Shown here one piece after another: positions 11,297-48,342 of a stretch of DNA of 64,000 nucleotides. The number at the start of each line of letters is the position of its first letter. The stretch's first letter is position 1. The notes beneath the pieces were generated by a model. That model saw nothing but the letters and a program-made list of their open reading frames with translations, was not told the origin of the DNA and searched no databases. The stretch spans positions 12,400,001 through 12,464,000 of the forward strand of contig NW_027266270.1 in assembly GCF_022045235.1 (NCBI RefSeq), in the 5' to 3' direction. The stretch is from Haliotis cracherodii (taxonomy: Eukaryota). The translations under genes were made by a program, and so were the position numbers.

Positions 11297-13558
11297 ATGG
11301 GACGAGGCCAGCTGTATTCTCGGGGCATGAAGAAACAAAGCCTTTCGACAACAGCCTTGCTGAACGCGCTGTTGTTAGGCTTATTTCTGAACCTGTGTCC
11401 TCTGTCAGTTTTCTTTACTGATCCAAATAGCCCGGAATTGTGCTTCATCAACTGGAAGAATTTGTTCTACACTGGACTCTGCTTTCTGAAACTCGTCTTC
11501 GCTCTACTGAAAAACAGGGTGCGAACGTCCCTATTGAGATATGGCGGATGGAGGGTTTTCTGCTGTGGCACGTTCATTGTCTTATCTAGTTACCTATTTG
11601 TTGTCTTAGTTTTGGACAGAGCAGCGCTTTGGACATGGGAAACATTTGAATACAATTACATCAATAGATTAGAGGATAGCGTCGTTACCATAGATGAAAC
11701 CAGATCCCAGTTTATGGTGCGTGATCGTGAGATCCCCGGTCCAGAACCCCTGAAGCTCGAGAGACACATGAGATACGAAGGTGAAGACGTAAGACTGGTA
11801 TGTGAAGACATGCTGGTTTTCAATGGAATTGTGAAATTCCACGAGAAGCAGGTGATCTGGAAGCATAATAGGCAGAAAATCGAATCATCGCCCCAGCATC
11901 ATATCACAACAGTGTTTGAAGAAGTCACTTTGAATACTTCTAAAACATTATCCACTGAGTATGACTTCTATATCTATCATGTGAAGTCAAAGCTTGACAT
12001 TAATCTTATCAATGCTGAAGATTTTGGAAAATATTCCTGTCACGTTGCAAAACTGGCCACATTGCTTGCGTCATATGCTAGCGTCAATATGAAAAAAACA
12101 AACGCGGATGAACAAAGTCAGTCTAGAAGAAAAGAATCGTATGAATGTCCGAATGTCCGCAAAGAGCCAACCAAATGCCCATGTCCTGATGAGGATTTGC
12201 CGTCCATGAACTTTAATCCCTTGCCATACACCTGGACTGCAGAGTTCAGTTTAGCAAAGATCAAACCTACGAGAAGAACTGTTTCTGTTCCAGTAGGTGG
12301 TATTGTTTCAACAAGTGCTTCATATAGTTATTTGGAAGACGCGCCAAATCTAATTGACTTTGATCATGAAATCAACGGAAAGTCCTTCCAAAATACATGC
12401 GAGGGACTTGATCAGTCATGCTCCATATTTGTGTTCCTGTACTGGTTCCTGTGGCATGATGGTGGCCATTACTCAAACATTCCTGCCTTCTATCAACAAC
12501 TTCAGATGGTGGAGGGCGTTGGCGGAACAAGCTGGCAATGCGTTTGTCCTAACACATACGGAGTCCACAAATTCGTCTTCTATCGCCAGTTCTATGATAC
12601 AACTCGGGGAACGAACACAATTATTGAAGTGGATTACCCAGACACTGTCGAACTTGTTCCCGAGGAACCCCATCTCTTAGACTTGTACTACAATGGCTCA
12701 AAGAAAGCTCTTCCGTTGCCAGAGCCGTCTTGTTGGGGGAGTGTGAAAACAAAAGCCTGTGAACTACTTGAAATGTTTCTAAAGAATCTATCCTATAACT
12801 ACTTTTATAAAGAAAAGCAGATATTCCTCGGCGGATTCATGTTTTGTCTAGTATTGCCTTGGATTTTGACCAGAACGATATTGACATGGGTGACCAATCC
12901 AATCATCAACATGATACTAGGGAGGAGACGAGTCAACATCCAACCAATCCAAGGAAGTGGTACACTGGCAGGACTTGCGCCAGCAGACAACACTGTTTTT
13001 AAATACGACCTCTACATTTCCTATGCTGATGAACAGACGGCAATGGCGTCTGAAATTGCCCAGGCGCTCACCTCGTGGGGTTTAAGGGTGTGTTTTCGTG
13101 ATAATGATGTTCTCGGAAATGAAATTGTTAACCAGGCTGTTTCAAGGCTGATTGTGGAGAGCTGGAAATTCCTCGTCATTGTCTCACAAGAATACGTCGA
13201 CAGCCAACTTCAGAATAATTTTGAAATGCACCTTATCATACAGAGGCTCCGTGATGGCTATATTAACAATAGAAATGTTGCCATGTTAGCCCTCAATCCT
13301 GATTTGATTCCAGATGTCTTCAGCAGTTTTGTTATTTTAAGCCACTATGAAAACAGTTCTGATGATTTGGATGACATAATGTTATGGCATGGACAATCTA
13401 TATTTCCTAATGATTCAAACACCTCGGCCAAAATTACAGGATCATGCCACTGCCGAGGGATCTTCGATTGCCTTCCACGATTCTTGACATATTTTATTAG
13501 AACAAGTTATGTTTTCTGTTTCATATTTTGTCTTGTACTTTTAACATGGTCTGTTTGA
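11297..13558 (+). CDS. Ig-TIR membrane receptor-like protein, paralog A (753 aa, single coding exon)
   Basis: Long ORF. Ig motifs EGEDVRLVC / VIWKHN / SKLDI..INAEDFGKYSC. TIR box 1 YDLYISY, box 2 GLRVCFRDNDV, then SWKFLVIVSQEY. Hydrophobic stretches at the N-terminus, before the TIR and at the C-terminus. Splice acceptor TTTTGTTTCAG just upstream. Confidence 0.9.
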   Translation: MGRGQLYSRGMKKQSLSTTALLNALLLGLFLNLCPLSVFFTDPNSPELCFINWKNLFYTGLCFLKLVFALLKNRVRTSLLRYGGWRVFCCGTFIVLSSYLFVVLVLDRAALWTWETFEYNYINRLEDSVVTIDETRSQFMVRDREIPGPEPLKLERHMRYEGEDVRLVCEDMLVFNGIVKFHEKQVIWKHNRQKIESSPQHHITTVFEEVTLNTSKTLSTEYDFYIYHVKSKLDINLINAEDFGKYSCHVAKLATLLASYASVNMKKTNADEQSQSRRKESYECPNVRKEPTKCPCPDEDLPSMNFNPLPYTWTAEFSLAKIKPTRRTVSVPVGGIVSTSASYSYLEDAPNLIDFDHEINGKSFQNTCEGLDQSCSIFVFLYWFLWHDGGHYSNIPAFYQQLQMVEGVGGTSWQCVCPNTYGVHKFVFYRQFYDTTRGTNTIIEVDYPDTVELVPEEPHLLDLYYNGSKKALPLPEPSCWGSVKTKACELLEMFLKNLSYNYFYKEKQIFLGGFMFCLVLPWILTRTILTWVTNPIINMILGRRRVNIQPIQGSGTLAGLAPADNTVFKYDLYISYADEQTAMASEIAQALTSWGLRVCFRDNDVLGNEIVNQAVSRLIVESWKFLVIVSQEYVDSQLQNNFEMHLIIQRLRDGYINNRNVAMLALNPDLIPDVFSSFVILSHYENSSDDLDDIMLWHGQSIFPNDSNTSAKITGSCHCRGIFDCLPRFLTYFIRTSYVFCFIFCLVLLTWSV

Positions 13559-14796
13559 TTGAAGACCTCTGTGCTTGCCTTGTTGGCCTTATATGACCGC
13601 GTTTGCCTTATATGGAGCATTGCTGTTGTATCAATATAATGTATCATTGAAAGATATGAAGAAATGAGTGCACCTGGTGTTAAATAAGTTCAGTATTAGG
13701 AGGTTAGGATCTCTACAGGGACTGAGCATCTATTTTCAACAAGACATTTGGGTGCATGAGGGATGCGATTATTATGATGACCATACTTCTCTGTACATTG
13801 TATGCTCGTCAAAACAATTTAGGGATCACTGATATTTTGTAGCACTGTTCATTCGATTCCTTAAAATTTGGTGAATGGACTCCTGATCGACGGCTAACGT
13901 ACTGATATTGAGGACTACCCTTACTCAAGTGACTACATGACCAGAACAAAGAATTTGAATCATACTGAACTCGTAAACGTTCATTTTGACCAGCACTAAT
14001 TTTCATGGAAATTCTTGTTGTAATCTCCTCCTCACATCTACCGTAAAAATGGAGATCGTTCATTTGCTCACTTATTCTCATGAAGCATGAGCCAAAAGGA
14101 ATTTTGTGCGAAATTTGGGTTGATAAAGGCAGGTCGCTATGAAACTGCATCACTGTGTTCAACATGCCACAACGTCGACACCTCACGATTGAAGAACGAG
14201 CCAGAGCTATTGGGTGGCTAAATGAGAATGTTTCACAGCGGGAAGCTGCTCCAAGGTTAAATGTTAGTACATCCGTCATCTGCATATTACGTCAGCGATT
14301 CCAACAAACACAGACAGTACATGATAGACCAAGGTCAGGACGCCCTCGTGTGACAACATGAAGAGGAGACCGGTACGTCGTTGTTGAAGCATTGAGGAGG
14401 AGAACAGTCACAGCAAACCATCTTCGAAAGCAACTGAGGGCTGCTACAGGAACAAATGTCAGTGACCAAACCATAAGAAACCGTATGAGGGAAAGAAACA
14501 TCTGGCCCCGACGTCAAGCCGTTAGACCGCTTCTTCTTCCGCGTCACAGAGCAGCCAGAGACGCATGGGCACGGCAACACCGACAGTGGACAAGACAACA
14601 GTGGTCAGCAGTTCTTTTTTTCTGACGAATCTCGGTTCTCACTGAAGCATAATGACGGTCGTGTTCTTGTCTACAGACGGCGTGGGGAACGTTTTACTGA
14701 CGTCAACGTCCGTGAGCACAATCGTTTTGGTGGTGGTAGTGTCATGATGTGGGCCGCCTTCTAATTTCATCACAGAACCAATCTTTATGTCATCAA

Positions 14797-15070
14797 CGTC
14801 TAAGGCGCCGCGATTCGCTGTGCAGAGTTGCGTCTCTTGGGCACGCCAGAAACCAATGATTGTGGGTTCGAATCCCGGTTCGCCCCGATTATGTTTGAAT
14901 TCTAGGTTTGTCAGTACAATACCCGTGCTCGTGGGTTTCACCGAAGTGGTAAACGTCCGAGACCTGCATCACTTCGGGCTTTCCTCCCACATTAAGCTGA
15001 CACGCCGTGATATAACTGGAATACTGTTAAAAGCAGCGTTAAACCCAACTCACTCTCTCACTCACTCACT
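14797..15070 (+). mobile_element. SINE (family 2) inside the Tc1 transposase
   Basis: GTCTAAGGCGCCGCG..GGTTCGAATCCC B box..(ACTC)n tail. Confidence 0.85.
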
Positions 15071-15463
15071 CCTGATATGGCACCCATTGAACACGTATGG
15101 GATCTGTTAACGAGACGTGTTAGGGAGAACCACCCTCCACCTCAAGATCTGCGCCAGCTTGCTCAATGGCTGAATTTGGAGTGGCATGCTATCCCACAGA
15201 ACACACTACAGACATTAGTGACATCCATGAGGCGTCGTTGTGTTGCATGTGTGGCTGCTAGGGGCGGACACACTCGTTACTGACTTTTCTCTCATGGCCT
15301 GGATTTCCAACTTTGACCCCAGTGACATTATTGACATCAACACTTGTTCACGTTATGAAATGAAGTGGATTGTTCATGATTCTGTCTTACTGTATGCTCG
15401 GTCATTATTGAATTTACTACACATGTCTTCGTCTTCTGTTCCTTTTTTATTTTAAGTGCTAAC

Positions 15464-15745
15464 AGGGGGCACGGGTGGCCCAGTCGTCTAAGGCGCCGCG
15501 ATTCGCTGTGCAGAGTTGTGTCCCTTGGGTACGCCAGAAACATAATTGTGGGTTCGAATCCCGATTCGCCCCGATTATGTTTCTAGGTTTGTCAGCACCA
15601 TACCCGTGCTCGTGGGTTTCACTGAAGTGGTAAACGTCTGAGACCTGCATCACTTCGAGCTTTCCTCCTACATTAAGCTGACACGCCGTGATATAACTGG
15701 AATACTGTTAAAAGCGGCGTTAAATCCAACTCACTCACTCACTCA
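15464..15745 (+). mobile_element. Full-length SINE (family 2) with TSD
   Basis: GGGGGCACGGGTGGCCCAGTCG head; flanked by TTAAGTGCTAACA / TTAAGTGCAAACA. Confidence 0.88.
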
Positions 15746-16010
15746 ATTAAGTGCAAACATATCAATGTTCCCTAACTTCTTTTGAGTAGTATATATGGAC
15801 CCCGTGAGGATTCTGGGTTGGAATAGGTCTGAAGAGCCGGTTAAAGAGGATCGACCGGTCAATCCCAGCGATTGGATTTATACAAAATCTCGTATCAAGA
15901 CTATGTAATGGGTAGATAGCATGGATGGATCATGTGTATAGGATCACGTGTGTTATATGGTATATTGGAGAGAATTATATCACATTGTAGAAGATTATCT
16001 CACATCTTAA

Positions 16011-16830
16011 GGATCCACGAGTTCGTCTTCTACCGTCAGTTCTACAATACATCCCTTGGATTATACGAAGTTATTGTTGTGGAATATTCTACTTGTGTGG
16101 TGTAATCAATGCAGATACTTGAGTATCTTTTGTAAAGGACTGGTTTGGATTTTGACCAATCTCATTAAAATCAGATCTTAGTTCTCGCTACCGCTAAACA
16201 AAGATCTGAGAACACCCCATTACTGGTCATGTCAGACCGACGTTGCGCGACCGACCGATGGAATGACCGACAAGAAGTCGACATTAGCCAATAAGAAAGC
16301 AGCTTTCTCGTGCTTTACGGCACTAATTTCAAATTGGCGACTACGTTTCGAAACATATTTTGACAAATTCTCGATTAAAAGTTTGAAATCTGAACAAAAG
16401 AACATTCTGGATTTATGGCTTATAGATGGTCTAGATTGTATGCATGGATTCAGTCGTTAAGCTCGTAACTATCGCTGGGAATACCCCGTGTTAAGGTTTT
16501 CGAGGTTGCATGATCAGAAATCATATTCCAACTGTCACTTTTATGATCTGGTAAGCGACGCTCTGATTGGTCGGATGAAAGGTGAACCCAAATGGGATGT
16601 CCTCAGACCAAGAACGATGTTGAGACGGAAGACATATCCAAGCATCAGTATGATACTTGGGAGGAGAAATGTAAATATTCAGTCAATTCAAGGAAGGGGA
16701 ACAATAGAAAGACTTGCACCACCAGACATCAATGTTGATAAATGCGACCTCTATATTCCTATGCTGACGATCAGAGGACAAAAGAGCCCAAGCTCTCAAC
16801 TGGCAAGGTTTGGGAGTGGGGTTCTAAATG
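16011..16830 (+). pseudogene. Degraded fifth copy of the Ig-TIR gene (central, TM and early TIR fragments), split by an insertion
   Basis: 16011-16090 matches GVHKFVFYRQFYNT..VEY. 16137-16158 and 16611-16780 match GLAWILT|RT..NPIINMILGRRRVNIQPIQGRGT..LAP..KYDLYI. Deletions and frameshifts are present. Confidence 0.85.
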
Positions 16831-16984
16831 TAAATTTGTAATCGCAGACCTGTTGAATATTGAATGAAATGACCTAACCTGGCTATGTATATATTTTGTA
16901 CACATACACGCACATTCGCACTTGTAAGCGATTGAGTGAACATGCCTGTTTATTGCTTCGGGCATTGCTGATCACAGCTGACGC

Positions 16985-17805: not shown

Positions 17806-18218
17806 ACACATAATAATATATTAACGTTTCCTGATGGTATCGATTTTGATAGAAGTGATGTTGAATAGTAAGCCTATCTTAAACGCAGCTTAAGAACGGC
17901 CATTTCTGTTACCTATAGGCAGGGCATTTTTAGACACAGGTAATTTCAATAATTTATATTTAATATACACAATTGATGCACGGGTTGATGCATGTCATTG
18001 TATACCAATTACGTGGACCGATGCTCATGATGTCAAACATGTGACACAATATCAATCACTGGATTGTCTGGTCCAGACTCGATTATTTACAAACCGCAGT
18101 CATATCGTTAGAATATTGATGAACGCGGCGTTAAACAACAAACAAGCAAATCATAAACAGTGGTGATTTTAGTTTATTTATTGATTTTGTCCCCAGCTCA
18201 CCAGTCGGCGTGTACAAC

Positions 18219-20480
18219 ATGGACCAACGACGAAAGCTGTATTCTGGGGCTACAAGGAAACCACCCGTTTCTACACCAGCCTTGCTATGTGTCCTGTCTG
18301 TTGGCTTAGCGCTGAACCTTTGTCCTATCATCGACTTATTTACCGACCCAAACAGCCCTGACTTGTGTTTCATTAATTGGTATAAGCTGCTGTATATTGG
18401 ATACTGTTTCCTGAACCTCATTGTTGCTCTGTTGAGAAGCTCTGCCCGGAGGTCTGTGCTGAGATATGGCGGTTGGAGGGTGTTCCTGTGTGGCATGTTC
18501 ATCGTCGTGTCGAGTTATATCTTTGTTACGGTTGTTTTGGACAGATCAGCTCTATGGACGTGGAACACTTTTGAATCCAATTTCATCAAGAGACTGGAGA
18601 GCAACGTCGTTGGGATATTCGAAACTAGGCCTGACTTCGTTGTTCGTGAGTTCCGCACTCTAGAACCCATGAAACTCGAGCGACAAGCCAGGTATGAAGG
18701 TGAAGATGTAAGACTCGTGTGTGAGAACATCTTGATTTTCAATGGAAGAGTAACATTTCACGAGAAACAGGTCATCTGGAAGCATAATAAAGAAAGAATT
18801 GAATCGTCATCCCGACACCACATCACCACGTCGTTTGACGAAATACCTACAAATGAGACTATAAGAACATTGTCGAGTCTTCTTGATATGGACCTTCATT
18901 TATATCGTGTTGAATCAAAACTTGATATCTATCTAATTGAAGATGGTGATTTTGGAAAATTCTCCTGTCATGTTGCCAAAAAAGCTATAGCTATAGAATC
19001 GCAGCACAGTAAATCAGACACAGCTTCAAAACAGACCCGAACAACCACAAAGGAAAAAGTCCAAAATAAACCAAGAGAGAAACAACAATCACCCGAATGT
19101 CCTAAAACACGTGATGAACAGAACCGATGTCCCTGTCATTTTGAGGATTGGGCCCACATGAACTTAAATGTTTTACCCTATCAGTGGACGGCAGAGTTCA
19201 GTCTGGCGAAGATCAAACCTACGAGAAGAATTGTGTCTGTTCCAATAGGTGGTATTGTTTCAACAAATGCTTCATATAGTTATTTGAATGACGGGCCAAG
19301 CGTAATTGACTTTGATCATGAAATCAACGGAAATTCCTTCGTAAGTACATGCGAGGGACTTGATCAGTCATGCTCCATATTTGTGTACCTGTACTGGTTC
19401 CTGTGGCATGATGGAGGCCATTACTCAAACATTCCTGCCTTCTATCAACAACTTCAGATGGTGGAGGGCGTTGGCGGCACAAGCTGGCAATGTGTTTGTC
19501 CTAACACATACGGAGTCCACAAATTCGTCTTCTATCGCCAGTTCTACAATACGACTCTTGGAACATACCAAGTTATTGATGTGGAATACCCAGACACTGT
19601 CGAACTTGTTCCCGAGGAACCCCATCTCTTAGACTTGCATTACAATGGCTCAAAGAAAGCTCTTCCGTTGCCAGAGCCGTCTTGTTGGGGGAATGTGGAA
19701 ACAAAAGCCTGTGAGTTACTTGAAAGGCTTCTAAGGAGTCTATGTTGTAACTACTTTAACAAAGAAAAGCAGATATTCCTCTGCGGATTAATATTTTGTT
19801 TAGGATTGGCTTGGATCTTGACCGGAACGATATTGAGATGGGTGACCAATCCATGTATCAACATGATACTTGGAAGAAGACGAGTTAACATTCAGCCAAT
19901 CCAAGGAAGAGGTACACTAGCAGGACTTGCTCCAGCAGACAACACTGTCGTTAAATACGACCTCTACATTTCCTATGCTGATGAACAGACGGCAATGGCG
20001 TCTGAAATTGCCCAGGCGCTCACCTCGCGGGGTTTGAAGGTGTGTTTTCGTGATAATGATGTTCTCGGACATGAGATTGTTACCCAGGCTGTTTCAAGGC
20101 TGATTGTGGAGAGCTGGAAATTCCTCGTCATTGTCTCACAAGAATACGTCGACAGCCAACTTCAGAATAATTTTGAAATGCCGCTTATCATACAGAGATT
20201 CCACGAGGGTTATATCAACGACAGAAACGTATCCCTCTTACCATTGCGCCATGATTTGATTTCCAATGTCTTGAACAATTTCATTGTTCTGGACAAGTGT
20301 GAAAACAGTGAGGATCTAATAGAAGATGTACTGTTATGGTATGGGCCGTCGCTATTTCCAAACACTGCCCATATCATCAGACGTCGCCACTACGGTTTTA
20401 CATCGACCTCAGCCTACTATGTCAGTGGTGTTTGCTTTTATTTGTTGCTTTGTATACTTCTTACGGGCTCTGTTTGGTAG
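18219..20480 (+). CDS. Ig-TIR membrane receptor-like protein, paralog B (first ATG at 18219)
   Basis: Same architecture as A: EGEDVRLVC..WKHN..DFGKFSC; YDLYISY..GLKVCFRDNDVLG..SWKFLVIVSQEY; hydrophobic C-terminal tail. AATAAA at about 20983. Confidence 0.9.
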   Translation: MDQRRKLYSGATRKPPVSTPALLCVLSVGLALNLCPIIDLFTDPNSPDLCFINWYKLLYIGYCFLNLIVALLRSSARRSVLRYGGWRVFLCGMFIVVSSYIFVTVVLDRSALWTWNTFESNFIKRLESNVVGIFETRPDFVVREFRTLEPMKLERQARYEGEDVRLVCENILIFNGRVTFHEKQVIWKHNKERIESSSRHHITTSFDEIPTNETIRTLSSLLDMDLHLYRVESKLDIYLIEDGDFGKFSCHVAKKAIAIESQHSKSDTASKQTRTTTKEKVQNKPREKQQSPECPKTRDEQNRCPCHFEDWAHMNLNVLPYQWTAEFSLAKIKPTRRIVSVPIGGIVSTNASYSYLNDGPSVIDFDHEINGNSFVSTCEGLDQSCSIFVYLYWFLWHDGGHYSNIPAFYQQLQMVEGVGGTSWQCVCPNTYGVHKFVFYRQFYNTTLGTYQVIDVEYPDTVELVPEEPHLLDLHYNGSKKALPLPEPSCWGNVETKACELLERLLRSLCCNYFNKEKQIFLCGLIFCLGLAWILTGTILRWVTNPCINMILGRRRVNIQPIQGRGTLAGLAPADNTVVKYDLYISYADEQTAMASEIAQALTSRGLKVCFRDNDVLGHEIVTQAVSRLIVESWKFLVIVSQEYVDSQLQNNFEMPLIIQRFHEGYINDRNVSLLPLRHDLISNVLNNFIVLDKCENSEDLIEDVLLWYGPSLFPNTAHIIRRRHYGFTSTSAYYVSGVCFYLLLCILLTGSVW

Positions 20481-20529
20481 AATATCTTTTCTAATTGTGT
20501 CATCATATATGAATTGCTGCTTAGGTTTT

Positions 20530-21287: not shown

Positions 21288-22548
21288 AGTCAGTGAGTTG
21301 GGTTGTACGTTGTCTTTAGCACTATCCCATCTATGATACAGCAGGGGACTTTCGACACGTTGGCCTCGTATGTGAATTGAACTCGGTATTCAGTGTGAGG
21401 AGTAAACCTTTTCGGTGTGAGGAACGTTTTCGGTGTAAGGAGTGAATGTTTTCGGTGTAAGGAGTGAAGGTTTTCGGTGTGAGGAGTGAAGGTTTTCGGT
21501 GTGAAGAGTTAAGGTTTTCGGTGTAAGGAGTGAACGTTTACAGTGTAAGGAGTGAACGTTTTCGTTGTGAGGAGTGAACGTTTACGGTGTAATGAGTGAA
21601 CGTTTTCGGTGTGAAGAATGAATGTTTTCGGTGTGAGGAGTGAACGTTTACGGCGCAATGAGTGAACGTTTTCGGTGTGAAGAATGAACGTTTTCGTTGT
21701 GAGGAGTGAACATTTACGGTGCAATGAGTGAACGTTTTCGGTGTGAAGAATGAATGTTTTCGGTGTGAGGAGTGAACGTTTTCGGTGTAAGGAGTGAACG
21801 TTTTCGGTGTGAAGAATGAATGTTTTCGGTGTGAGGAGTGACATGAGGAGTGAGGAGTGAACGTTTTCGGTGTAAGGAGTGAACGTTTTCGGTGTAAGGA
21901 GTGAACGTTTTCGGTGTATGGAGTGAACGTTTTCGGTGTGAGGAGTGAACGTTTTCGGTGTAAGGAGTGAACGTTTTCGGTGTGAAGAATGAATGTTTTC
22001 GGTGTGAGGAGTGAACGTTTTCGGTGTAAGGAGTGAACGTTTTCGGTGTGAAAAATGAATGTTTTCGGTGTGAGGAGTGAACGTTTTCGGTGTGAAGAAT
22101 GAATGTTTTCGGTGTGAGGAGTGAACGTTTTCAGTGTAAGGAGTCAACGTTTTCGGTGTATGGAGTCAACGTTTTCGGTGTAAGGCGTGATCGAACGTTT
22201 TCGTGTAAGGAGTGACATGAGGAGTGAGGAGTCAACGTTTTCGGTGTAAGGAGTGAACGTTTTCGGTGTAACGAGTGTATATGTTTTCGGTGTGAGGAGT
22301 GAACGTTTTCAGTGTAAGGAGTGAACGTTTTCGGTGTGAAGAATGAATGTTTTCGGTGTGAGGAGTGAACGTTTTCGGTGTAAGGAGTGAACGTTTTTGG
22401 TGTGAAGAATGAATGTTTTCGGTGTGAGGAGTGAACGTTTTCGGTGTAAGGAGTGAACGTTTTTGGTGTGAAGAATGAATGTTTTCGGTGTGAGGAGTGA
22501 ACATTTTCGGTGTGAGGAGTGAACGTTTTAACCACCACATTATCCCAC
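21288..22548 (-). mobile_element. Old family-1-like SINE whose head region expanded into a minisatellite
   Basis: SINE tail and body at 21288-21390; SINE 5' end TTTTAACCACC..ATCCCA at about 22527-22548. The mirror copy at 34788-34955 lacks the expansion. Confidence 0.7.
21392..22530. repeat. 22-bp minisatellite (about 50 units)
   Basis: Unit GGTGT(A/G)AGGAGTGAACGTTTTC, with variant GAAGAATGAATG. Confidence 0.95.
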
Positions 22549-24134
22549 TTCATCGCAAAACATAACACTTTTCCATTACCGTCGGTAACAAAGTTTCATC
22601 AGAGACTATAAAATACATATTTTGTCAGTCGTAAACTTCTTTCAAAATTCACTATGATGGCATTCCCAAAGACATAAACAAAAGTATAAGTATTTAACCA
22701 TGTATCATATGACTAACCACGGAGCCGGGTAGTCCTGTGGGTACCCGCGGATCCTGCTCAGGACCCACCCGAACCGAGTACCCGAGCTACGTACCCGTCC
22801 CAACCCTATACATTTGGGCGCGAGGGCAATTTTTTTCTCTCAACATTCTTGTAATGGCCACGCCCGACAAGGGTGGCAGCGATGTCACTAAGAGTGTATC
22901 GAAAGTGTCACGCGCTGGGAAGGAGCATGAGCGGCGATTAAACTGGTTCCACTGTTGGTACACGACGCAAGCTTAGCGCGATCTAGTTTAGGTAGACGGA
23001 AACCCAATCTAGAGCGGCGAATAAGCTGGTTCCCGGCTCCCTATGCGCGTCGTCAACTTGCGCCAAGCTATTGGAGACGGGGCCCAGCTTAGAGCGGCAA
23101 TGAGCGCAAGCGCTCACAGAAGGCAAAACCAGTCTATCCCAGGAGTCGGAGAGCTTTAAGCTGGGCCCCGTCTCCATTATCACAATATATAGGAGCCGGT
23201 ACAGGCCAATGAGACGATGGCTGTGAGCCCCTTCGAAATATTAAACATACACTATGTTATGTAATTTTTCATTGGTCGCTATTTTTAGACGAAGCGCTAC
23301 CCTTCTACAAAAGCCTCCACTGAGAAACGTCACAAACTACTTTAAGTCATTTTGTTAGATGTGCCACCGTTGGGTGCAGGAAAGACCTTCAAACTTTAAA
23401 TTGTAATTAATTGTAGGAAATTAAATTTCCAAAATTATTTTCTTCATATATTTTACGTACATGATATCGATATGTAAGAGAAATGATAGTAAACATAGTC
23501 TAGCGTATTCTTTGCATGAACATTTCGCAGGTTTTCGAATACACCCCCAAATTGTGCTATGCGAGACAAATATTTATTATACACTTGTCAGAAAACTTTG
23601 AGCGAATAAAATATTCTCAGGTATTTGAATGAGACACGCATGTTGGAAGTTTATATATGTCGACATATGTAGAACCACCTATAAAGTATAAATGTCGCAT
23701 TGAAAATATTCCTAACTTTGTCTTTCCATTCCATGACGTCTAAAAAGTTTATTTTAGAGGGTTGGTGTTCCATTTAAAGAATAAAGAATAACTCGTAATA
23801 AATATGATGTGACTCTTCTGACAAAATAGAAATGTGTTGTACGACTCGTATGTGGTTGCAATATATTTATTGGATGATTACGTTTAAAATGATAAAACTT
23901 CTGTTGAAAATATTGAAATTGGAATAGAATAGCAATTAACTATGGCCGATGTTGATATTTTCTAGCTATATATTTTTAAACAACATTCAAATGCAATACA
24001 ATTATTAATACCAACGAAATAAGTCAATGTCCACCCAGTCATCACTTCTAACTTTGTACAACATTGTAGCTGAGTGACAGCAGTATGAAGGTGACATTCC
24101 GTTTCAAAGTGTTACAAATAATACTATATAGTAG

Positions 24135-31341: not shown

Positions 31342-31399
31342 CAGACCATTGTCGAGGGTGCATCAACTCATTGCGGAGTTGCTTCCCTTACCGGGGCGA

Positions 31400-35830: not shown

Positions 35831-35923
35831 CTGTCTTATAAAGGCAAATAATACATATTAATATATTGTGCCATATGAGCCACATTGTGGAAACACGTGT
35901 CATTGTAATCACTTCACGTGTGC

Positions 35924-36192: not shown

Positions 36193-36406
36193 GTACATTG
36201 CAAAGGAGCTAATTCATAACATTCAAAATCACATACTTCTAGGTTACGGAAACATGCGAGTGCTGACGAATGCATCCATATCTCCAGAAGACTTTGTTTC
36301 CCCCACTTCTAAACCTAAGCAGTAATTCATATATGACAAGTCCCAAATACTTTTCAGAAAACTATTGCATTGCTGCTGTGGAATGACACCATCAGAAGAA
36401 AGTATT

Positions 36407-38659
36407 CTACCAAACAGACCCTGTAATAAGTATACGAAACAACAAGTAAAAGCAAACACTGCTGACGCAGTAGACCGAGGTTGATGTAAAACCGCAATCA
36501 TGGCCTCTTATATTAATATGGACAGCGGTATATGGTTCGTTTTGAAATAGTGACGGTCCGTGCCATAACATTATATCCTCTACACGATCCTCACTGTTTT
36601 CATACTGGTTGAGAATAACGAAATTGTCAAAGACATCGGAAATCAAGTTTGGTTGCAATGGTAAGAGGGCTACATTTCTGTTGCTGATATAACCGTCGTG
36701 GAATCTCTGTATGATAAGGCGTATTTCAAAATCATTCTGAAATCGGCTGTCAACATACTCTTGTGAGACAATGACGAGAAATTTCCAGCTCTCCTCAATC
36801 AGCCTTGAAACAGCCTCGGTAACAATGTCATGTCCGAGAACATCATTATCACGAAAACACACTCTCAAACCCCGCGAGGTGAGAGCTTGGGCGATTTCAG
36901 TCGCCATTGCCATCTGTTCATCTGCATACGAAATGTAGAGGTCGTATTTAACAACAGTGTTGTCTGCTGGCGCAAGTCCTGCTAGCGTACCTCTTCCTTG
37001 GATTGGTTGGATGTTGACTCGTCTCCTCCCAAGTATCATGTTGATGATTGGATTGGTCACCCATGTCAATATCGTTCTGGTCAAAATCCAAGCCAGTCCT
37101 ATACAAAATGATAGTCCAAAGAGGAATATCTGCTTTTCTTTGTAAAAGAAGTGACTTGATAGATCCTCCAGCCACATTTCAAGAAACTCTTGTTTATCAA
37201 CATCCTCCCAACAAGACGACTTTGGCAACGGAAGAAGTTTCTTTGAGCCTTTGTTATACAAGTCCAAGAGATGGGGCTTCTCGGGAACAAGTTCTACAGT
37301 GTCGGGATATTCCACATCAATAACTTGGTATGTTCCAAGGGTCGTATTGTAGAACTGGCGATAGAAGACGAATTTGTGGACTCCGTATGTGTTAGGACAA
37401 ACACATTGCCAGCTTGTGCCGCCAACGCCCTCCACCATCCGAAGTTGTTGGTAGAAGGCAGGAATGTTTGAGTAATGGCCACCATCATGCCACAGGAACC
37501 AGTACAGGAACACAAATAAGGAGCATGACTGATCAAGGCCCTCGCATGTTTTAATGAAGGACCTTCCGTTGATTTCATGATCAAATTCAATGAGTCTGGG
37601 CGTGTCATCCAGATTCATATAAGACGCACTCGTAGAAACTATACCACCTATTGGAACAGACACCGTTCTTCTCGTAGGTTTGATCTTTGCTAAATTGAAC
37701 TCTGCAGTCCACTCATACGGTAAAACACTGAAGTTCTTGTGAGCCCAATCCTGAGAAAGACAGGGACATCGGTTATGTCCCTCGCGTGTATTGGGACATT
37801 CTCTGACTTTATTTTTGACTTTTTCTTTTGTTGCCGTTCGGGTCTGTTTTGAGTCTTTTCCTGATTTACTGTCCTGCGATTTTATAGCAATAGCGTCTTT
37901 GGCAACATGACAGGAAAATTTTCCAAAATCATCGTTATTAATTAGAAAAATTTCGAGTTTTGATTCAACACGATATAAATGAAGGTCCATGTCAAGTCGA
38001 CTCGACACTGTTCTGATAGTGTCATTTTCCGGTATTTCGTCAAACGACGTGGTGATGTGGTGTCGGGATGACGATTCAATTCTTTGTTTATTATGCTTCC
38101 AGATGACCTGTTTCTCGTGAAATGTTACTCTTCCATTGAAAATCAAGATGTCCTCACACACGAGTCTTACATCTTCACCCTCATACCTGGCTTGTCGCTC
38201 GAGTTTCATGGGTTCTAGGGTGCGGAGCTCACGAACAACAAAGTCAGGCCTAGTTTCGAATATACCCACGACGTTGCTCTCCAGTCTCTTGATGAAGTTG
38301 GATTCAAAAGTGTTCCACGTCTATACAGCTGATCTGTCCAAAACAACCGTAACAAAGATATAACTCGACACGACGATGAACATGCCACACAGGAACACCC
38401 TCCAACCGCCATATCTCAGCACAGACTTCCGGGCAGAACTTCTCAACAGAGCAACAATGGGGTTCAGGAAACAGTATCCAAAATACAGCAGCTTATACCA
38501 ATTAATGAAACACAAGTCAGGGCTGTTTGGGTTGGTAAACAAGTCGATGATAGGACAAAGGTTCAGCGCTAAGCCAGCAGAAAGCACACATAAAAAGGCT
38601 GATGTTGAAATGGGTGGTTTCCTCATACCCCGAGAAGACAGCTGGCACCGTTCGTCCAT
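36407..38659 (-). pseudogene. Ig-TIR paralog B': full-length frame with one in-frame TAG at 38323-38321 (TGG/Trp in B)
   Basis: ORFs 38321..38668 and 36407..38269 are in the same frame. B' reads GCT GTA TAG ACG TGG where B reads GCT CTA TGG ACG TGG; otherwise the frame is intact through to GSVW*. Confidence 0.8.
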
Positions 38660-38759
38660 GTTATACACACTGGCTGTTCAGCTGAGGATAGAATAATAAA
38701 CACCTTATAATCACCACTATTCAAAGAGTAATTGCCCCCTTATCAAAACAAATCTAAAA

Positions 38760-42965: not shown

Positions 42966-43311
42966 TTTCACTGTGTACCACGGATACTTCCGAGGTACTA
43001 GTAGGTTTTCATTCTGTTAAAATGTATAAAAATGTGTTTATATGTTGCTAAGGAACAGGGGGCCTAGCCAATTAGCTTGAAGCAAATTATAAAGTCGACT
43101 ACACCAATATCCTTTCCACTATGGGCCATCCTACTCACGGATATAGATGAAACTATGCCATAAACCGTGATATACCGTGGAACAAACATATGTCCTACTC
43201 TTATAAAGGATCGATTTAGCGACTAGGATCCTGAATACAATCGCTGGCCGCGCACCTTATCAGTGAAAGGAGTGTTAGGGGCATCGCTTGAGAAAGAGTT
43301 CCTGCTCTTTC

Positions 43312-43436
43312 GTGAGTGAGTATGGTTTTACGCCGCTTTTAGCAATATTCCAGCAACATCACGACCCGGGACACCAGAAATGGACTTCACACATTGTACC
43401 CATGTGGGGAATGGATCCCGGGTCTTCGGCGTGACA
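43312..43436 (-). mobile_element. Truncated family-1 SINE
   Basis: GTGAGTGAGTATGGTTTTACGCCGC...GGTCTTCGGCGTGAC. Confidence 0.8.
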
Positions 43437-44733
43437 ACTGCAAGAGGCACTTTCCTAGGGATGCATTATGACCCCTCGTGACTTTCATTGCTTTGCTGAT
43501 ATTGTAACGTCAGCAAACGTTTTGGGGACCAACCATTTGATATTAGGGGGTATGGGTTTTTATTGAGAAAAAACCCATTGTCCCCAAAAAGTCTTGAAAA
43601 ACATAATTATGCTTCAGACTGCTTGACGTGCCTTCCATTACTTGTGTCAATATGGTGTTAGCAAAAGCGTCTATGCTTGTCTTAAGAGGCGACTAACGCG
43701 ATCGGGTGGTCAAGGCTCGCCAACTTGGTTGATGCATGTCATCGTATCTCAATTGCTTTGAGTGATGCTCATGATGTCACTGGATCGTCTGGTCCAGACT
43801 CGATTATTTACAGACCGTCGTCATATAGCTGGAACACTGCTAAGTATGGCGTCAAACAAAATACCATGTGGTAGTGATAGGTATAAGTCTGGTTAGATGT
43901 TGACCCCTGAACGTGTCATTAACAGGTCATGTGACTTTTCTCAGCCAATCAGAACAGACTGGATGGCTTTCAAATCGCAAGCATTACATAGGTAATGGCA
44001 TATCCAACACAAGTGATTACTAAATGTCTTTGTTTAGACCCAATACAAAGTGAAATATATCTTAAAACAATTTAGGGGAAGACCGTTTCCAAAACCATCT
44101 TGTGCATCAGGTCATTGTTTATCTGGATGAAATGCCCAGCTTACTTTCTATAAATATAAACTAGGTCATGTCTGACAAGTGCTTCTAGTGCGGACATGCA
44201 GTGAGTGATAAACATAGATATCAACAGTGAACATGACACCCCTAAAGTTCAATCGATAAAGTACAACACTAAGTGACTTTCTATGATACTGTAATCTTAT
44301 TTACTTTACTGTCAAAATCATGGGGGGATATTTGCAGATAGATCGTGATATAAGGAAACTAGGTAACGCTTATGATTGACAAGGTTCGGATTACGCTTAC
44401 TGCTTATAGAGCTTCAATAACAGTATTAACTAAAACACTATAGTATTGAAGCTCACGAGAACCCTTAAATGTGAGGATGGGGAAATACAAGAAACATTTT
44501 TTTAAATCTTTATTTTGCACAACACAAAGACCATGCATCATTATTTGTGATTGAGCCATTCATGACAAATGACCTGAATACTTAAGGCGTCTTTAACATG
44601 GCGAACCGGTCAAGCAATCAACATGAACATATAATAATAACAATGGCGTGTTGAGAATTTTGCTCAACCGTTCCACGGCCAACATCTACATACACACAGA
44701 GGATTTGCTGCAAAACCGAGTTTAGAATCAATA

Positions 44734-45063
44734 TACCGTATAGACGTAATAAGCGCGTTGCTCTAAGAAGCGCCCACGGCGATATTTGCTCATTTTTTGG
44801 CTAGTGAACAATCTCAATTAGCACCCCTTCCAACTGTACACAAGACTTATTTATTCGTGTATAATACGCACTCGTATGTTATATACACCCTTAATTATGG
44901 GCAATTAAATCCTGGAAAAATATTTCTGTCGTATATAAACATTTCAGGTTGTCAGCATAAGCCACGAAATTTACGATCTTTCGACTCAAAATAATATTCT
45001 AATAAGAGCCCCCTATTTCTAATTTTGAGAGCGCCCTGGGCGCTTATTACGTCGAATACGGTA
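44734..45063. mobile_element. pogo/Tigger-type MITE
   Basis: TACCGTATAGACGTAATAAGCGC...GCGCTTATTACGTCGAATACGGTA. Confidence 0.75.
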
Positions 45064-46065
45064 ATTCTGTATACAGATGCCTTTCATTTTTTTAATGTGT
45101 CTTTTCACCCCCTCTCTACACACCGCCATGCTGAGCTACAAAATGGACACCATTAAACGTGTACAAATAACTCAGAAATACTGGTATTTCCTACTATTGT
45201 ACTTATCTTTTACAACTAAATCATTCCTGGACGTTAAGCAAAATAATCTAGTCAATTACAACACATGGTGCGGGTGTGTGCACACACACCCTTTTATTAT
45301 TTCGAAAAAAATCTTTATTTCTGTATAAATTACCACCAAGGACAATATATAGATCTTAATTGTGCACCCCCCTCCTTTTCAAAAAGCTGTATCCGCCCAT
45401 GGTACCTATACTATTACATATATATTCTGAATGTATAAATCCAAGTCACTAGGACTGACCAACCGATCCTGTTTAAGTGGCCCTTTAGACATATTCCATC
45501 CCAGAATCCTCACAGGGTCCATACACAATGTAGAAGAAAATTATGGTCATCATAATAATTGCATCCCTCTTTTACCCAATGGGCTTTTGTTCAGAACATG
45601 CTCAGCCCATGCACATATCCTAACCTCATAATCCTAAACTAATTAGCATAAGGTGCACCTATTTCTTTAAATATTTCATTTTCATCAAAGGCTTGTTTCA
45701 AAGCTTGCCACACCAAGCCCACTTTCCTGTGCTAAAAATGATTGGACTATCGCACATATAGATAGTCCAATTAGAGAACGTTTCACAAAATCAACATCCA
45801 CGACTGGTACACCTTCGTATGAAAGTGGTTTACCGCTGGGATATGTCTTTTTCATCTTCAATTGGATATCGCGTTTTCATTACAAGGGGCACAACTCGTA
45901 GTCTACGCGAGGTGGCGCCAGGGTTGAGCCAAGAAAAGTGGCCTTGTTGTGGCAAGGGTAGAAACTAGGCTTTGATATAGGCTAGTGGACACGCTTGCCT
46001 TGAGAAGATGTCCATACCACATCAATGGTCCATATATGCCTTCAATCAAACAAACCATTTTACAA

Positions 46066-48342
46066 CTATAAAATATGAAATATAACTGCAATCAACACTA
46101 TTGTATTAAAATATATCAAGAATATGATAAAGCCATCGAAGATCCCTTGGCAGTGGCGTAGTTCTGTAATTTGGGCCGAGGTGTATGATTCATTAGGAAA
46201 TAAAGATTGTCTGTGCCATAACAGTATATCATCCAAAACATCAGAACTGTTTTCATAGTGGCTTAAAATAACGAAACCGCTGAAGACATCTGGAATCAAA
46301 TCAGGATTGATGGCTAACATAGCAACATTTTTATTGTTAATATAACCATCACGCAGCCTCTGTATGATAAGGTGTATTTCAAAATTATTCTGAAGTCCAC
46401 TGTCGACGTATTCTTGTGAGACAATGACGAGAAATTTCCAGCTCTCCCCAATCAGCCTTGAAACAGCCTGGTTAACAATTTCATTTCCGAGAACATCATT
46501 ATCACGAAAACACACTCTCAAACCCCGCGAAGTGAGCGCTTGGGCGATTTCAGTCGCCATTGCCATCTGTTCATCTGCATACGAAATGTAGAGGTCGTAT
46601 TTCACAACAGTGTTGTCTGCTGGCGCAAGTCCTGCTAGTGTACCTCTGCCTCGGATTGGCTGAATGTTGACTCGTCTCCTCCGAAGTATCATGTTGATGA
46701 TTGGATTGGTCACCCTCGTCAAGAGCGTTTTACTTAAACAATAAGAAACAGCTACACACACAATTATTCCACCGTAGAAAATTTGTTTCTCTTTGAGGAA
46801 AAAGTCACAAGCCATCGACTGTAAAATGATTTCAAGATACTTGCAGACTGTTGTTTCTATTCCCCCCCAACAAGAGAGCTCTGGCAAAGGAAGAAGTTTC
46901 TTTGAGCCATTGTAATACAAATCCAAGACAAGGGGCTCCTGAGGAACAAGTTCTACAGTGTCGGGATATTCCACATCAATAATTTCGTGTGTTCCAAGGG
47001 CCGTATTGTAGAACTGGCGATAGAAGACGAATTTGTGGACTCCATATGTGTAAGGACAAACACATTGCCAGCTTGTGCCGCCAACGCCCTCCACCATCTG
47101 AAGTTGTTTATAGAAGGCAGGAATGTTTGAGTAATGGCCACCATCATGCCACAGGAACCAGTACAGGAACACAAATATGGAGCATGACTGATCAAGTCCC
47201 TCGCATGTCTTTAGGAAGGACCTTCCGTTTATTTCATGATCAAAATCAACTACACTTGGCACGTCATTCAAGTAACTATATGACGCGCTTGTTGACACTA
47301 TACCACCAACTGGAACAGACACAATTCTTCTCGTTGGTTTGATCTTTTCTAAAATGAACTCTGCAGACCATGTGTATGGTAAGGGTTTGAAGTTCTTAGG
47401 AGGCAAATCCTCAACAGGAACTGGGCATCTGGTTTGTTCTTTGCGGACATTCGGGCATTCAGACGACTTTCTTCTTTCTGAATAATCTTCATTATTTTTA
47501 CTTTTGGCGGAACCTTGTTTACCTGTGTGTGTTTCCCTCTTTTCGTGTCTCATAGGTGTGTTGTAATTTTTGGGGTTGCTCGCAAGTGACGCAATTATTG
47601 TGGCCATTTTTGCAACGTGACAGGAATATTTTCCAAAATCTTCAGCATTGATAAGATTAATTTCAAGGTTTGACTTTACACGATAAAAATAAGTATCAGT
47701 AATATTCAAAGGGACTTCTTCAAACACTGTTGTGATATGGTGCCAGGACGATGATTCAATTATCTGTCCATTATGCTTCCAGATCACCTGCTTCTTGTGA
47801 AATTTTACAATTCCCTGGTAAATCAGCACGTCTTCACAAACCATTCTTACATCTTCACCCTCGTATCGCATGAGTCTCTCAAGCTTCAGGGGTTCTGGAC
47901 CGGGGATCTCACGGTCACGCACCATAAACTGGGATCTGGTTTCATCTATCATAACAATGCTATCCTCTAATCTATTGATGTAATTAGACTTAAATATTTC
48001 CCATGTCCAAAGAGCTGACCTGTCCAAAACTACGGCAACAAATAGGTAACTAGATAAGACAATGAACAAACCACAACAGAAAACTCTCCATACGCCATAT
48101 CTCAACAGGGACGTTCGCACTCTGTTATTCAGAAGAGCGAAGGCGAGTTTCAGAAAGCATAGTCCAGTGTAGAACAAATTCTTCAAGTTTATTAAACACA
48201 AGTCCTGGCTATTTGGATCGGTAAAGAAAACTACCAGAGGAAACAGGTTCCAAAATAAGCCAATCAACAGCACATGCAGCAAGGCTGTTGTCGAAATGTT
48301 TGGTTTCTTCATGCCCCTTGAAGACAGCTTGCCTCGTCCCAT
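46066..48342 (-). CDS. Ig-TIR membrane receptor-like protein, paralog A' (758 aa)
   Basis: Intact long ORF; N- and C-termini closest to A; same Ig, TM and TIR motifs; the same acceptor TTTTGTTTCAG lies upstream. Confidence 0.9.
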   Translation of the reverse strand: MGRGKLSSRGMKKPNISTTALLHVLLIGLFWNLFPLVVFFTDPNSQDLCLINLKNLFYTGLCFLKLAFALLNNRVRTSLLRYGVWRVFCCGLFIVLSSYLFVAVVLDRSALWTWEIFKSNYINRLEDSIVMIDETRSQFMVRDREIPGPEPLKLERLMRYEGEDVRMVCEDVLIYQGIVKFHKKQVIWKHNGQIIESSSWHHITTVFEEVPLNITDTYFYRVKSNLEINLINAEDFGKYSCHVAKMATIIASLASNPKNYNTPMRHEKRETHTGKQGSAKSKNNEDYSERRKSSECPNVRKEQTRCPVPVEDLPPKNFKPLPYTWSAEFILEKIKPTRRIVSVPVGGIVSTSASYSYLNDVPSVVDFDHEINGRSFLKTCEGLDQSCSIFVFLYWFLWHDGGHYSNIPAFYKQLQMVEGVGGTSWQCVCPYTYGVHKFVFYRQFYNTALGTHEIIDVEYPDTVELVPQEPLVLDLYYNGSKKLLPLPELSCWGGIETTVCKYLEIILQSMACDFFLKEKQIFYGGIIVCVAVSYCLSKTLLTRVTNPIINMILRRRRVNIQPIRGRGTLAGLAPADNTVVKYDLYISYADEQMAMATEIAQALTSRGLRVCFRDNDVLGNEIVNQAVSRLIGESWKFLVIVSQEYVDSGLQNNFEIHLIIQRLRDGYINNKNVAMLAINPDLIPDVFSGFVILSHYENSSDVLDDILLWHRQSLFPNESYTSAQITELRHCQGIFDGFIIFLIYFNTIVLIAVIFHIL

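Follow-up and report, generated by a model that had tools for sequence, protein, structure and literature searches.

Receptors of the IL-1 receptor (IL-1R) type cross the membrane once, in type I orientation; their signal peptide is cleaved, they mostly carry three Ig domains, and the TIR domain forms a free C-terminus. Toll-like receptors and the TIR-only transmembrane TRR proteins of Hydra are also single-pass, and in classical tail-anchored proteins the anchor is the sole membrane span and all that precedes it is cytosolic. Ig-TIR combinations have probably arisen more than once (PMC2858798), so that a likeness to IL-1R does not imply common descent. Surveys of oyster, Aplysia, cnidarians and amphioxus have counted Ig-TIR or 'IL-1R-like' proteins (PMC4346834, PMC9334734, PMC5094078, PMC2858798); in molluscs, the class has already been tallied (PMC4346834, PMC9334734). 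In contrast to receptors of the Toll and IL-1 types, the mollusc proteins described here have several predicted membrane crossings, and in snails the TIR domain is apparently tied to the membrane at both ends.

ORF analysis of a 64,000-nucleotide window of the Haliotis cracherodii assembly (NW_027266270.1, positions 12,400,001 to 12,464,000) showed four intronless Ig-TIR paralogs, each of about 755 aa (Table 1). A first-pass annotation had given all four the same architecture: three N-terminal hydrophobic helices, an Ig domain, a Cys/aromatic module (here the X module), a TM followed by RRR, a TIR domain and a hydrophobic C-terminus. The four ORFs lie where it placed them, and these elements exist and evolve under purifying selection (dN/dS of 0.3-0.4 for the gene as a whole, 0.24-0.57 in the N-terminal helices), but the helices at the N-terminus number two to three per paralog, and copy C is broken by an in-frame TAG. 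This codon occupies the first Trp position of the ALWTW motif found in A, B and D, and the frame is unchanged downstream. Hence, the cluster consists of three intact genes (A, B and D) and one with a nonsense codon, which is probably a young pseudogene or null allele. Similarity between the paralogs runs from about 60-95 bp upstream of the ATG to about 5-25 bp past the stop, and the cluster shows tandem duplication specific to its lineage, along with gene conversion and a variable loop in the Ig domain.

Table 1. Positions of the paralogs within the window, and of the features of paralog A.
Feature	Residues (paralog A)	Positions	Strand	Remarks
Paralog A		11297..13558	+	Intact single-exon ORF, 753 aa; 3 hydrophobic helices-Ig-X-TM-TIR-C-terminal hydrophobic tail
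TM1 or signal anchor	18-41	11348..11419	+	KD 2.0; basic N-terminus before (K+R = 4)
TM2	54-73	11456..11515	+	Marginally hydrophobic; basic loop after (K+R = 3)
TM3	86-107	11552..11617	+	Strongly hydrophobic; helical stalk onward to residue 127
Ig domain 1 (V/I-set type)	129-251	11681..12049	+	G strand = residues 311-321
Insertion between Ig1 F and G strands	258-307	12068..12217	+	Long, pLDDT < 50
X module	326-456	12272..12664	+	Beta-sandwich with one inserted helix (377-390); C375/C415 pair
TM4 then RRR	508-541	12818..12919	+	Within one long model helix, 486-541
TIR domain	568-702	12998..13402	+	Pfam TIR 33.3 bits, TIR_2 34.8 bits
C-terminal hydrophobic helix (putative membrane anchor)	725-752	13469..13552	+	1-2 residues beyond
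Paralog B		18219..20480	+	Intact ORF, 753 aa counted from first ATG; architecture as A
Paralog C		36407..38659	-	Architecture as A; single in-frame TAG at 38321-38323 (codon 113)
Paralog D		46066..48342	-	Intact ORF, 758 aa; architecture as A; nearest A (78% identity)

A profile search returned 100 relatives, 45 of them with E < 1e-10. Those that are named all come from molluscs, namely six gastropod genera (Haliotis, Gigantopelta, Pomacea, Babylonia, Biomphalaria and Bulinus) and five bivalve genera (Mercenaria, Mactra, Mya, Sinanodonta and Ostrea), and the range is mollusc-wide, beyond abalone. Conservation was assessed in 53 sequences (gastropod clade 36, bivalve clade 17), and the predicted polytopic N-terminus, Ig, X module, TM and TIR are common to the whole family. 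The relatives are all annotated as uncharacterised or hypothetical, standing in RefSeq as 'uncharacterized protein', and our literature search found no description of this mollusc Ig-TIR family or of its topology. The suggestion of a distinct undescribed class is partly supported, although Ig-TIR proteins as such have been counted in mollusc surveys and members are present in RefSeq. In summary, this is a real, uncharacterised family of Ig-TIR proteins of unusual predicted topology, for which an immune function is suggested by domain content.

The TIR domain is the most readily recognised part: the four copies exceed the Pfam gathering cut-offs both for TIR (31.7-35.5 bits against 21.3) and for TIR_2 (34.8-40.1 bits against 28), and 48/53 relatives also score above the Pfam cut-offs for this domain. 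The model, with pLDDT 88-95 for the greater part of residues 570-690, matches known TIR folds with VIA Z 16-17, rmsd 2.0-3.0 A and 121-138 residues aligned, including those of TIRAP, MyD88, Hydra TRR-2 (Z 17.3) and SARM1 (Z 16.0) and, within the IL-1R family, IL-18Rbeta and IL-1RAcPb. With phmmer against the PDB, the best sequence matches are the TLR15/TLR2 TIRs, also MyD88, the strength of the match being similar across TLR, MyD88, IL-1RAcP and SARM1 TIRs. As in Toll-like receptors, the TIR is of the kind that serves signalling in animals, is tethered to the membrane and has a conserved box 1 motif (Y-D-x-Y/F-I-S-Y). Unlike in Toll-like receptors and Hydra TRR, the window copies have another residue in place of the proline of box 2 (BB-loop RDxxPG), reading D-V-L-G-N compared to D-V-L-P-G in MyD88, and the column holds Pro in 25/53 family members; this proline is no strict requirement for membership of the TIR superfamily. 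Neither the four copies nor the 53 relatives have a Pfam match to an LRR ectodomain.

The ectodomain was less evident from profiles, since Pfam Ig scores fall below the cut-off in all four window copies. Nevertheless, the one clear Ig domain that had been proposed is real: Ig Pfam families match 34/53 members, the core C169/W188/Y246/C248 is retained in 49-52/53 relatives, and the model aligns with V/I-set Ig domains (VIA Z ~10, rmsd 2.2-2.8 A, ~90 residues aligned, model range 150..323). The insertion between its F and G strands varies in length, with indels in the alignment, and is the most divergent stretch across the paralogs (dN 0.17-0.66). The X module, modelled with a pLDDT of ~90, was likewise borne out. 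Two conserved Cys pairs in it speak for an extracellular or luminal site, and C375 and C415 do not vary across the family (53/53). Profile comparison gave no similarity of this module to Ig1, but in structural alignments it takes the place of the second domain of tandem-Ig chains (span 150..457, 159-178 residues aligned). Hence, it is most likely a second Ig-like beta-sandwich, which would make the ectodomain resemble a tandem Ig. The family thus shares with IL-1R and invertebrate Ig-TIR proteins an Ig-fold ectodomain and one TM directly before a predicted cytosolic TIR; it differs from IL-1R in having one canonical Ig and one atypical sandwich, Ig-like only by the tandem-Ig structural alignment, in two to three additional N-terminal hydrophobic helices, in predicted membrane helices flanking the ectodomain on both sides and, in snails, in an added putative C-terminal anchor.

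Hydrophobicity was calculated with the Kyte-Doolittle (KD) scale in a 19-residue window, and insertion energies are crude, the scale values for these and for the Eisenberg hydrophobicity and moment being approximate. Where IL-1R proteins are type I single-pass, the intact copies have five KD hydrophobic segments (peaks at residues 21-39, 54-72, 87-105, 511-529 and 733-751), one of them C-terminal to the TIR, the number of true spans being a prediction. TM1 has KD 2.0-2.2, at the widest 2.0-2.5 (model helix 18-33 in A, low pLDDT), and TM3 reaches 2.4-2.6 (A 2.4) with a crude insertion energy of -1.6 and a model helix 84-127 in A at pLDDT 84-90. TM2 is marginal, with KD just 1.4-1.6 in the paralogs; its crude insertion energy exceeds +2.7 kcal/mol in B, and in A and D goes beyond the reporting limit of 3.0, while its model helix (53-82 in A) has pLDDT 73-79. 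TM4 has KD 1.65-2.2 in the paralogs (A 1.7) and 2.2-3.3 in relatives, and in D is weak by crude insertion energy. A single TM between Ig and TIR places the Ig outside and the TIR inside. The charges (N-terminus K+R = 3-5; loop 1 K+R = 0, D+E = 2; loop 2 K+R = 3-4; RRR past TM4) follow a positive-inside pattern in five Haliotis proteins, and together with this parity fit the topology in-out-in-out(Ig)-in(TIR)-out. The first-pass annotation had also relied on N-glycosylation sequons in the middle region, an argument that falls away, as sequons occur in the TIR and tail linker too and so do not discriminate between topologies. The multi-pass arrangement is accordingly a prediction from hydrophobicity, charge bias and parity.

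The C-terminal segment has KD 1.9-2.6 in the paralogs (A 1.9), with 0-3 residues beyond; in A its crude insertion energy is +0.4 and its model helix, 725-752, has a pLDDT of only 57-72. The tail segments combine a high mean Eisenberg hydrophobicity (0.62-0.96) with a low hydrophobic moment (0.04-0.26), which points to a membrane-spanning rather than an amphipathic type. In snails, the tails are uniformly hydrophobic over 19-22 residues, followed by 0-11 residues in most members and 24-27 in three, with a recurrent Pro near the start, and their hydrophobicity is kept despite high dN across four snail lineages. Of the 36 gastropod-clade sequences, 30 have a tail, against 0 of 17 in the bivalve clade, where the TIR is C-terminal and free. 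The double anchoring of the TIR therefore appears to hold for snails and does not extend to the bivalve relatives. Such a stretch at the extreme C-terminus recalls tail-anchored proteins, which are defined by a single TM within the ~30 C-terminal residues and the lack of any other TM or signal sequence; here, further hydrophobic spans lie upstream, and a polytopic protein would end in the putative anchor as its last helix.

Taken together, we think it somewhat probable that the genes of the cluster belong to an uncharacterised family of integral membrane Ig-TIR receptors spread across molluscs, built and working as follows. The basic N-terminus would be cytosolic, TM1 and TM2 would form a hairpin, and TM3 would act as a signal anchor exporting the ectodomain. 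The latter would consist of a canonical Ig with a long variable F-G insertion and of a second Ig-like sandwich with a disulfide bond, with helical stalks on either side running into TM3 and TM4. TM4 and its RRR would return the chain to the cytosol, where a linker of ~27 residues would lead to the TIR and, in gastropods, a second linker of ~25 residues to the C-terminal membrane anchor. An extracellular ligand on the Ig domains may alter helix packing or oligomeric state, which would let the membrane-tethered TIRs meet and, by TIR-TIR assembly, signal with adaptors of the MyD88 type; the second tether may restrict this assembly to the membrane plane or couple it to the helix bundle. By design analogy only, this recalls bacterial two-TM sensors (chemoreceptors and sensor kinases), in which the ectodomain also lies between two membrane helices with helical stalks (84-127 and 486-541 in our model) and the signalling domain follows the second helix in the cytosol; there is no sequence or fold relationship, the proteins here are from animals, and the output is a TIR rather than kinase or HAMP modules.

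An immune function is suggested by the domain content, and the same protein could instead serve as a cell-adhesion or neuronal organiser, as IL1RAPL1 does in vertebrates, or as a TIR NADase effector consuming NAD+ upon activation. Non-immune roles do exist among Ig-TIR proteins, E643 lies at the catalytic position of enzymatic TIRs (Glu in 35/53 family members), and the match to the SARM1 TIR is on par with those to adaptor TIRs. However, the same Glu is found in non-enzymatic TIRs such as those of TLRs, the best sequence matches are to TLR15/TLR2 and MyD88, and the duplication, gene conversion and Ig-loop variability of the cluster are what immune receptor families typically show. None of these points is decisive, and we consider a non-immune job unlikely, though far from negligible.

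A simpler membrane arrangement, in which the chain spans the membrane only at TM3, a type II-like signal anchor, and at TM4, would also put the Ig outside and the TIR inside, TM3 alone satisfying this parity. The first two helices would then be a cytosolic, peripheral or re-entrant hairpin, in keeping with the marginal TM2 and the low model confidence for TM1, and the C-terminal helix, without which the bivalve clade functions, might pack on the TIR in an autoinhibitory manner or be a lipid-surface or degradation signal. This seems rather improbable to us, as TM1 is hydrophobic and preceded by a basic N-terminus, loop 1 (short, acidic) and loop 2 (basic) obey the positive-inside rule, and the snail tails are uniformly hydrophobic, low in moment and evolutionarily maintained, all of which speaks for the multi-pass model.

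It is quite doubtful that TM1 is instead a cleaved signal peptide, leaving a mature start outside, a TM2-TM3 hairpin and the remainder as in the multi-pass model. A basic region followed by a hydrophobic core would suit this, as would the first hydrophobic stretch of some bivalve relatives (at residues 3-8, signal-peptide-like), and the Ig would still be outside by parity; but a signal peptide would rarely have a core as long as ~23 residues, a clear cleavage motif of small residues was not seen, TM2, the weakest segment, would have to insert, and the basic loop 2 is correctly placed only by the logic of the multi-pass model. Finally, it is very improbable that the hydrophobic termini are annotation or ORF artefacts removed by alternative starts, splicing or early polyadenylation, since, although the database model of copy C starts downstream (600 aa) and that of H. 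asinina has a different C-terminus without the tail, the ORFs run uninterrupted from ATG to stop, the N-terminal helices are constrained, the similarity between paralogs extends beyond both ends, and both ends are present in RefSeq/GenBank models of Haliotis rubra (whose RefSeq model spans 99% of the ORF), Gigantopelta, Pomacea, Babylonia and Biomphalaria.

The four Ig-TIR paralogs of the cluster (A to D) were found as long, intronless open reading frames at the places predicted by the first-pass annotation, and the window that holds them sits on contig 7 of the 1.18-Gb genome. The best full-length relatives of the first reading frame are LOC124264548 of Haliotis rubra, an "uncharacterized protein" with 73% identity over 99% coverage, and, at 71%, a protein of Haliotis asinina. 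The expectation of four paralogs with a common architecture held for A, B and D, which are intact, but C carries an in-frame TAG (38321-38323, minus strand) at the first Trp of an ALWTW motif kept in the other three copies. The reading frame of C is unbroken apart from this codon, and its database model (600 aa) begins at a downstream Met and is without the N-terminal helices. We regard C as a null allele or a pseudogene of recent origin.

Features of the window, a fifth genomic copy and hydrophobic segments of the proteins (residues as in A; KD, Kyte-Doolittle score)
Feature	Position	Strand	Size or KD	Remark
Copy A	11297-13558	+	753 aa	intact
Copy B	18219-20480, from first ATG	+	753 aa	intact
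Copy C	36407-38659	-	~750 aa	one in-frame TAG
Copy D	46066-48342	-	758 aa	intact
Fifth copy (locus L005)	contig 10, 24260319-24262307			29% identity
Acceptor-like site	~11250-11259			38 bp before the ATG of A
SINE-like sequence, first	10900-10960			~340 bp upstream of A
SINE-like sequence, second	62913-63293
Tandem DNA repeat	21509-22568	-	212 + 145 aa	between B and C
Probable zinc-finger gene or exon	55824-56747	+	307 aa
TM1	~21-39		2.0-2.2
TM2	54-72		1.4-1.6	marginal
TM3	87-105		2.4-2.6
TM4	511-529		1.65-2.2
C-terminal tail	last ~20 residues		1.9-2.6

The closest pairs are A/D (78% identity) and B/C, which puts both the four genes and their strands in mirror order. The nucleotide similarity within these pairs (83% for A/D, window 11204-13564 versus 46040-48428; 87% for B/C, 18156-20503 versus 36383-38721) is limited to the gene bodies and the 60-95 bp or so upstream of them. 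When the A/D group is compared with the B/C group, the synonymous divergence of about 1-2.7 at both ends of the genes drops to only 0.2-0.55 from the conserved module that follows the Ig domain (X) to the TIR domain (residues 308-460 and 546-702), a pattern which fits gene conversion in this part. The dN/dS ratio among the four copies is 0.3-0.4 overall, indicating coding sequences under constraint, and 0.24-0.57 over the N-terminal helices. In the hydrophobic C-terminal tail, dN is high and the hydrophobicity is kept; only in the A/D pair does the dN/dS of the tail exceed 1 (1.33, on about 50 codons). Upstream of A, a polypyrimidine-AG sequence resembles a splice acceptor and suggests a spliced 5′-UTR exon, and two stretches of the window resemble tRNA-derived SINE sequence.

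One more family member, distant in sequence, is present in the genome. It has the N-terminal helices, Ig, X, TM and TIR of the cluster copies, together with a proline-rich, Cys-containing insertion after the first Ig domain (Ig1), and one TAG breaks its TIR region. Its H. rubra counterpart (LOC124284695) is 699 aa long and without the C-terminal tail.

We then examined the range of the family by a profile search of 1.8 billion representatives, which returned 100 proteins at E <= 0.001, 45 of them at E <= 1e-10. Most relatives are 700-800 aa long and aligned from the N-terminal helices through the end of the TIR. All named members are molluscs, labelled uncharacterised or hypothetical without exception, and they come from gastropods (Haliotis, Gigantopelta, Pomacea, Babylonia, Biomphalaria, Bulinus) and bivalves (Mercenaria, Mactra, Mya, Sinanodonta, Ostrea). 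Some relatives are atypical: a Bulinus truncatus protein (P0031) is, at 1897 aa, much longer than the others, and a Mactra protein (P0047) and a further relative (P0078) have an N-terminal region of about 300 aa with 4-8 hydrophobic peaks. Either fusion of gene models or real variation may account for them.

A midpoint-rooted tree of 53 members has two clades, in one of which all named members are bivalve and in the other gastropod. Several N-terminal hydrophobic segments, Ig, X, TM and TIR are common to all members, with three clear N-terminal spans in the best-resolved cases, such as Ostrea. The tail, scored at 1.5 or more, is present in 30/36 proteins of the gastropod clade versus 0/17 of the bivalve clade, whose scores do not exceed 1.3. 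Hence, the earlier suggestion of a TIR anchored on both sides applies, as a prediction, to the gastropod clade but not to the family as a whole. Apart from its hydrophobicity and a recurrent Pro near its start, the tail is poorly conserved in sequence; being divergent but hydrophobic, it has the look of a membrane span under constraint.

In the window copies, Ig1 scores under the Pfam cut-off. Ig1 is nevertheless a real domain, in agreement with the single clear Ig domain originally described: Cys169, Trp188, Tyr246 and Cys248 are retained in 49-52 of the 53 relatives, Ig Pfam families match 34 of the 53, and the modelled domain superimposes on antibody V and I-set domains at Z of about 10, with some 90 residues aligned at an rmsd of 2.2-2.8 A. 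These alignments span residues 150-323 approximately, which places the G strand at 311-321 and makes the poorly modelled, indel-rich stretch 258-307 a long F-G loop insertion. The X module (326-456), first noticed as a Cys/aromatic module, also proved real and is the best conserved part of the protein, with C375 and C415 invariant in 53/53 members and C368 and C417 common. The model, at a pLDDT of about 90 here, makes it a beta-sandwich that contains a single inserted helix, and in Foldseek and VIA-align comparisons it falls on the second domain of chains with tandem Ig domains (titin, NCAM2, DSCAM, Axl, LRIG1), in alignments of 159-178 residues over 150..457. Profile comparison by hhalign found no similarity of X to Ig1 or to the TIR. 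As X and Ig1 share no profile similarity, calling X Ig-like is a structural reading based on the model, in which we have moderate confidence. A search of the ESM Atlas gave weak Ig leads for residues 1-540 (0.82-0.87, guide value 0.9) and no match for the N-terminal 130 residues.

The AlphaFold model was built from the 53-sequence alignment and reached a mean pLDDT of 76.6, compared with only 30 from six near-identical Haliotis sequences. Its TIR part (570-701) has a pLDDT of 88-95 across most of its length and matches TIRAP, Hydra TRR-2, IL-18Rbeta, oyster TIR-STING, MyD88, IL-1RAcPb and SARM1 at Z 16-17. Pfam TIR and TIR_2 exceed their curated cut-offs in all four copies, and the nearest TIRs by sequence are those of TLR and MyD88. 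Box 1 is kept in the window TIRs, the Glu that is catalytic in enzymatic TIRs is present (35/53 of the family), and the proline of the BB loop, still present in about half of the family, is replaced by Gly. These features do not discriminate between a scaffold and an NADase mode of action.

The order of N-terminal helices, Ig, module, TM-RRR, TIR and hydrophobic tail was largely right as first described, and we looked at how these segments could cross the membrane. On the Kyte-Doolittle scale with a 19-residue window, a crude measure, the intact copies have five peaks. A biological hydrophobicity scale, applied as a crude sum without position weighting, ranks the segments in the same way: TM3 and the tail score as clearly insertion-competent and TM1 as borderline, TM2 is poor, and TM4 varies. 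In five Haliotis proteins, the N-terminus contains 3-5 K+R; the TM1-TM2 loop contains no K/R and two acidic residues (one in H. asinina); the TM2-TM3 loop contains 3-4 K+R; and RRR follows TM4. This charge pattern obeys the positive-inside rule for a predicted N-in topology. As exactly one hydrophobic helix lies between a disulfide-bonded Ig outside and a TIR inside, TM3 should run from in to out, and by the same parity TM1 and TM2 either both span the membrane or both do not. This parity is the strongest argument for a topology that we infer from sequence.

In the model, TM3 and TM4 are helices (84-127 and 486-541) that extend past the membrane as stalks flanking the ectodomain, and the tail is a helix (725-752, pLDDT 57-72) joined to the TIR by a disordered linker. 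The high mean hydrophobicity of the tail and its very low hydrophobic moment make the tail segments look like membrane spans, not amphipathic helices. We rejected a reading of the tail as a GPI signal, which would need a luminal TIR, whereas a single TM with RRR separates the disulfide-bonded Ig domains from the TIR. A hairpin in the 34-residue TM4 region was dismissed, as its halves are too short, the model has one helix there and relatives have a single hydrophobic peak. We also rejected the middle-region N-glycosylation sequons, previously offered in support of the topology, since the TIR and the tail linker carry sequons too and their distribution does not discriminate. In summary, the proposed in-out-in-out(Ig)-in(TIR)-out topology is a plausible prediction.

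To our knowledge, the animal TIR receptors that have been studied well (Toll, TLR, IL-1R) all cross the membrane once, and their free cytosolic TIRs assemble after ectodomain dimerisation. With their predicted multi-pass topology, the proteins of this family differ from the single-pass type I IL-1R and Toll families; they contain none of the LRRs of Toll and fall outside the definition of classical tail-anchored proteins. Surveys of invertebrates recognise Ig-TIR ("IL-1R-like") proteins as a class, with more than one origin proposed (PMC2858798, PMC5094078), and have counted them in oyster and Aplysia (PMC4346834, PMC9334734). The odd arrangement is already glimpsed in a published table. In the literature covered, we found no publication defining the family, the multi-pass N-terminus, the second sandwich or the clade-specific tail, and the principal inventory of bivalve TIR proteins (Gerdol et al. 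2017, to which PMC10279657 and PMC6321704 refer) may list the architecture.

The family is real, conserved and uncharacterised, and its members are Ig-TIR receptors of unusual predicted topology, for which a polytopic receptor is the best-supported reading. A ligand outside the cell would bind the Ig/Ig-like ectodomain, and the change would pass via the two stalk helices or via oligomerisation, whereupon the TIRs, kept close to the membrane on linkers some 25 residues long, would assemble and recruit TIR adaptors. An immune role is suggested by the domain content and the tandem-duplicated, gene-converting cluster only. We tentatively put forward, as a possibility rather than an expectation, a distinct mollusc TIR-receptor class in which a ligand-binding Ig ectodomain lies between membrane helices of a small bundle, the gastropod TIR is membrane-tethered at both ends, and signalling occurs as a polytopic protein changes conformation or rearranges in the plane of the membrane. 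If true, this would set the class apart from Toll and IL-1 receptors, which are defined by dimerising single-pass chains. With a TIR between two membrane anchors and a sensor between two membrane helices, it would solve the engineering problem of TIR signalling in a different way, and it would offer a natural test of the freedom required by a TIR domain for signalling assembly. The immune repertoires of abalone and of schistosome-carrying snails (Biomphalaria, Bulinus), which are poorly understood, would gain a defined, expanded receptor family, and the RefSeq models in many species make experiments possible at once.

Two other features of the window were observed. The tandem repeat comprises two adjoining ORFs of a unit of about 22 residues, with the motif TPKTFTPHTENVHS...HRKRSLL, and its GC skew is strongly positive (0.16-0.25). 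The other is an ORF with an acidic N-terminal part followed by a run of C2H2 zinc-finger motifs.
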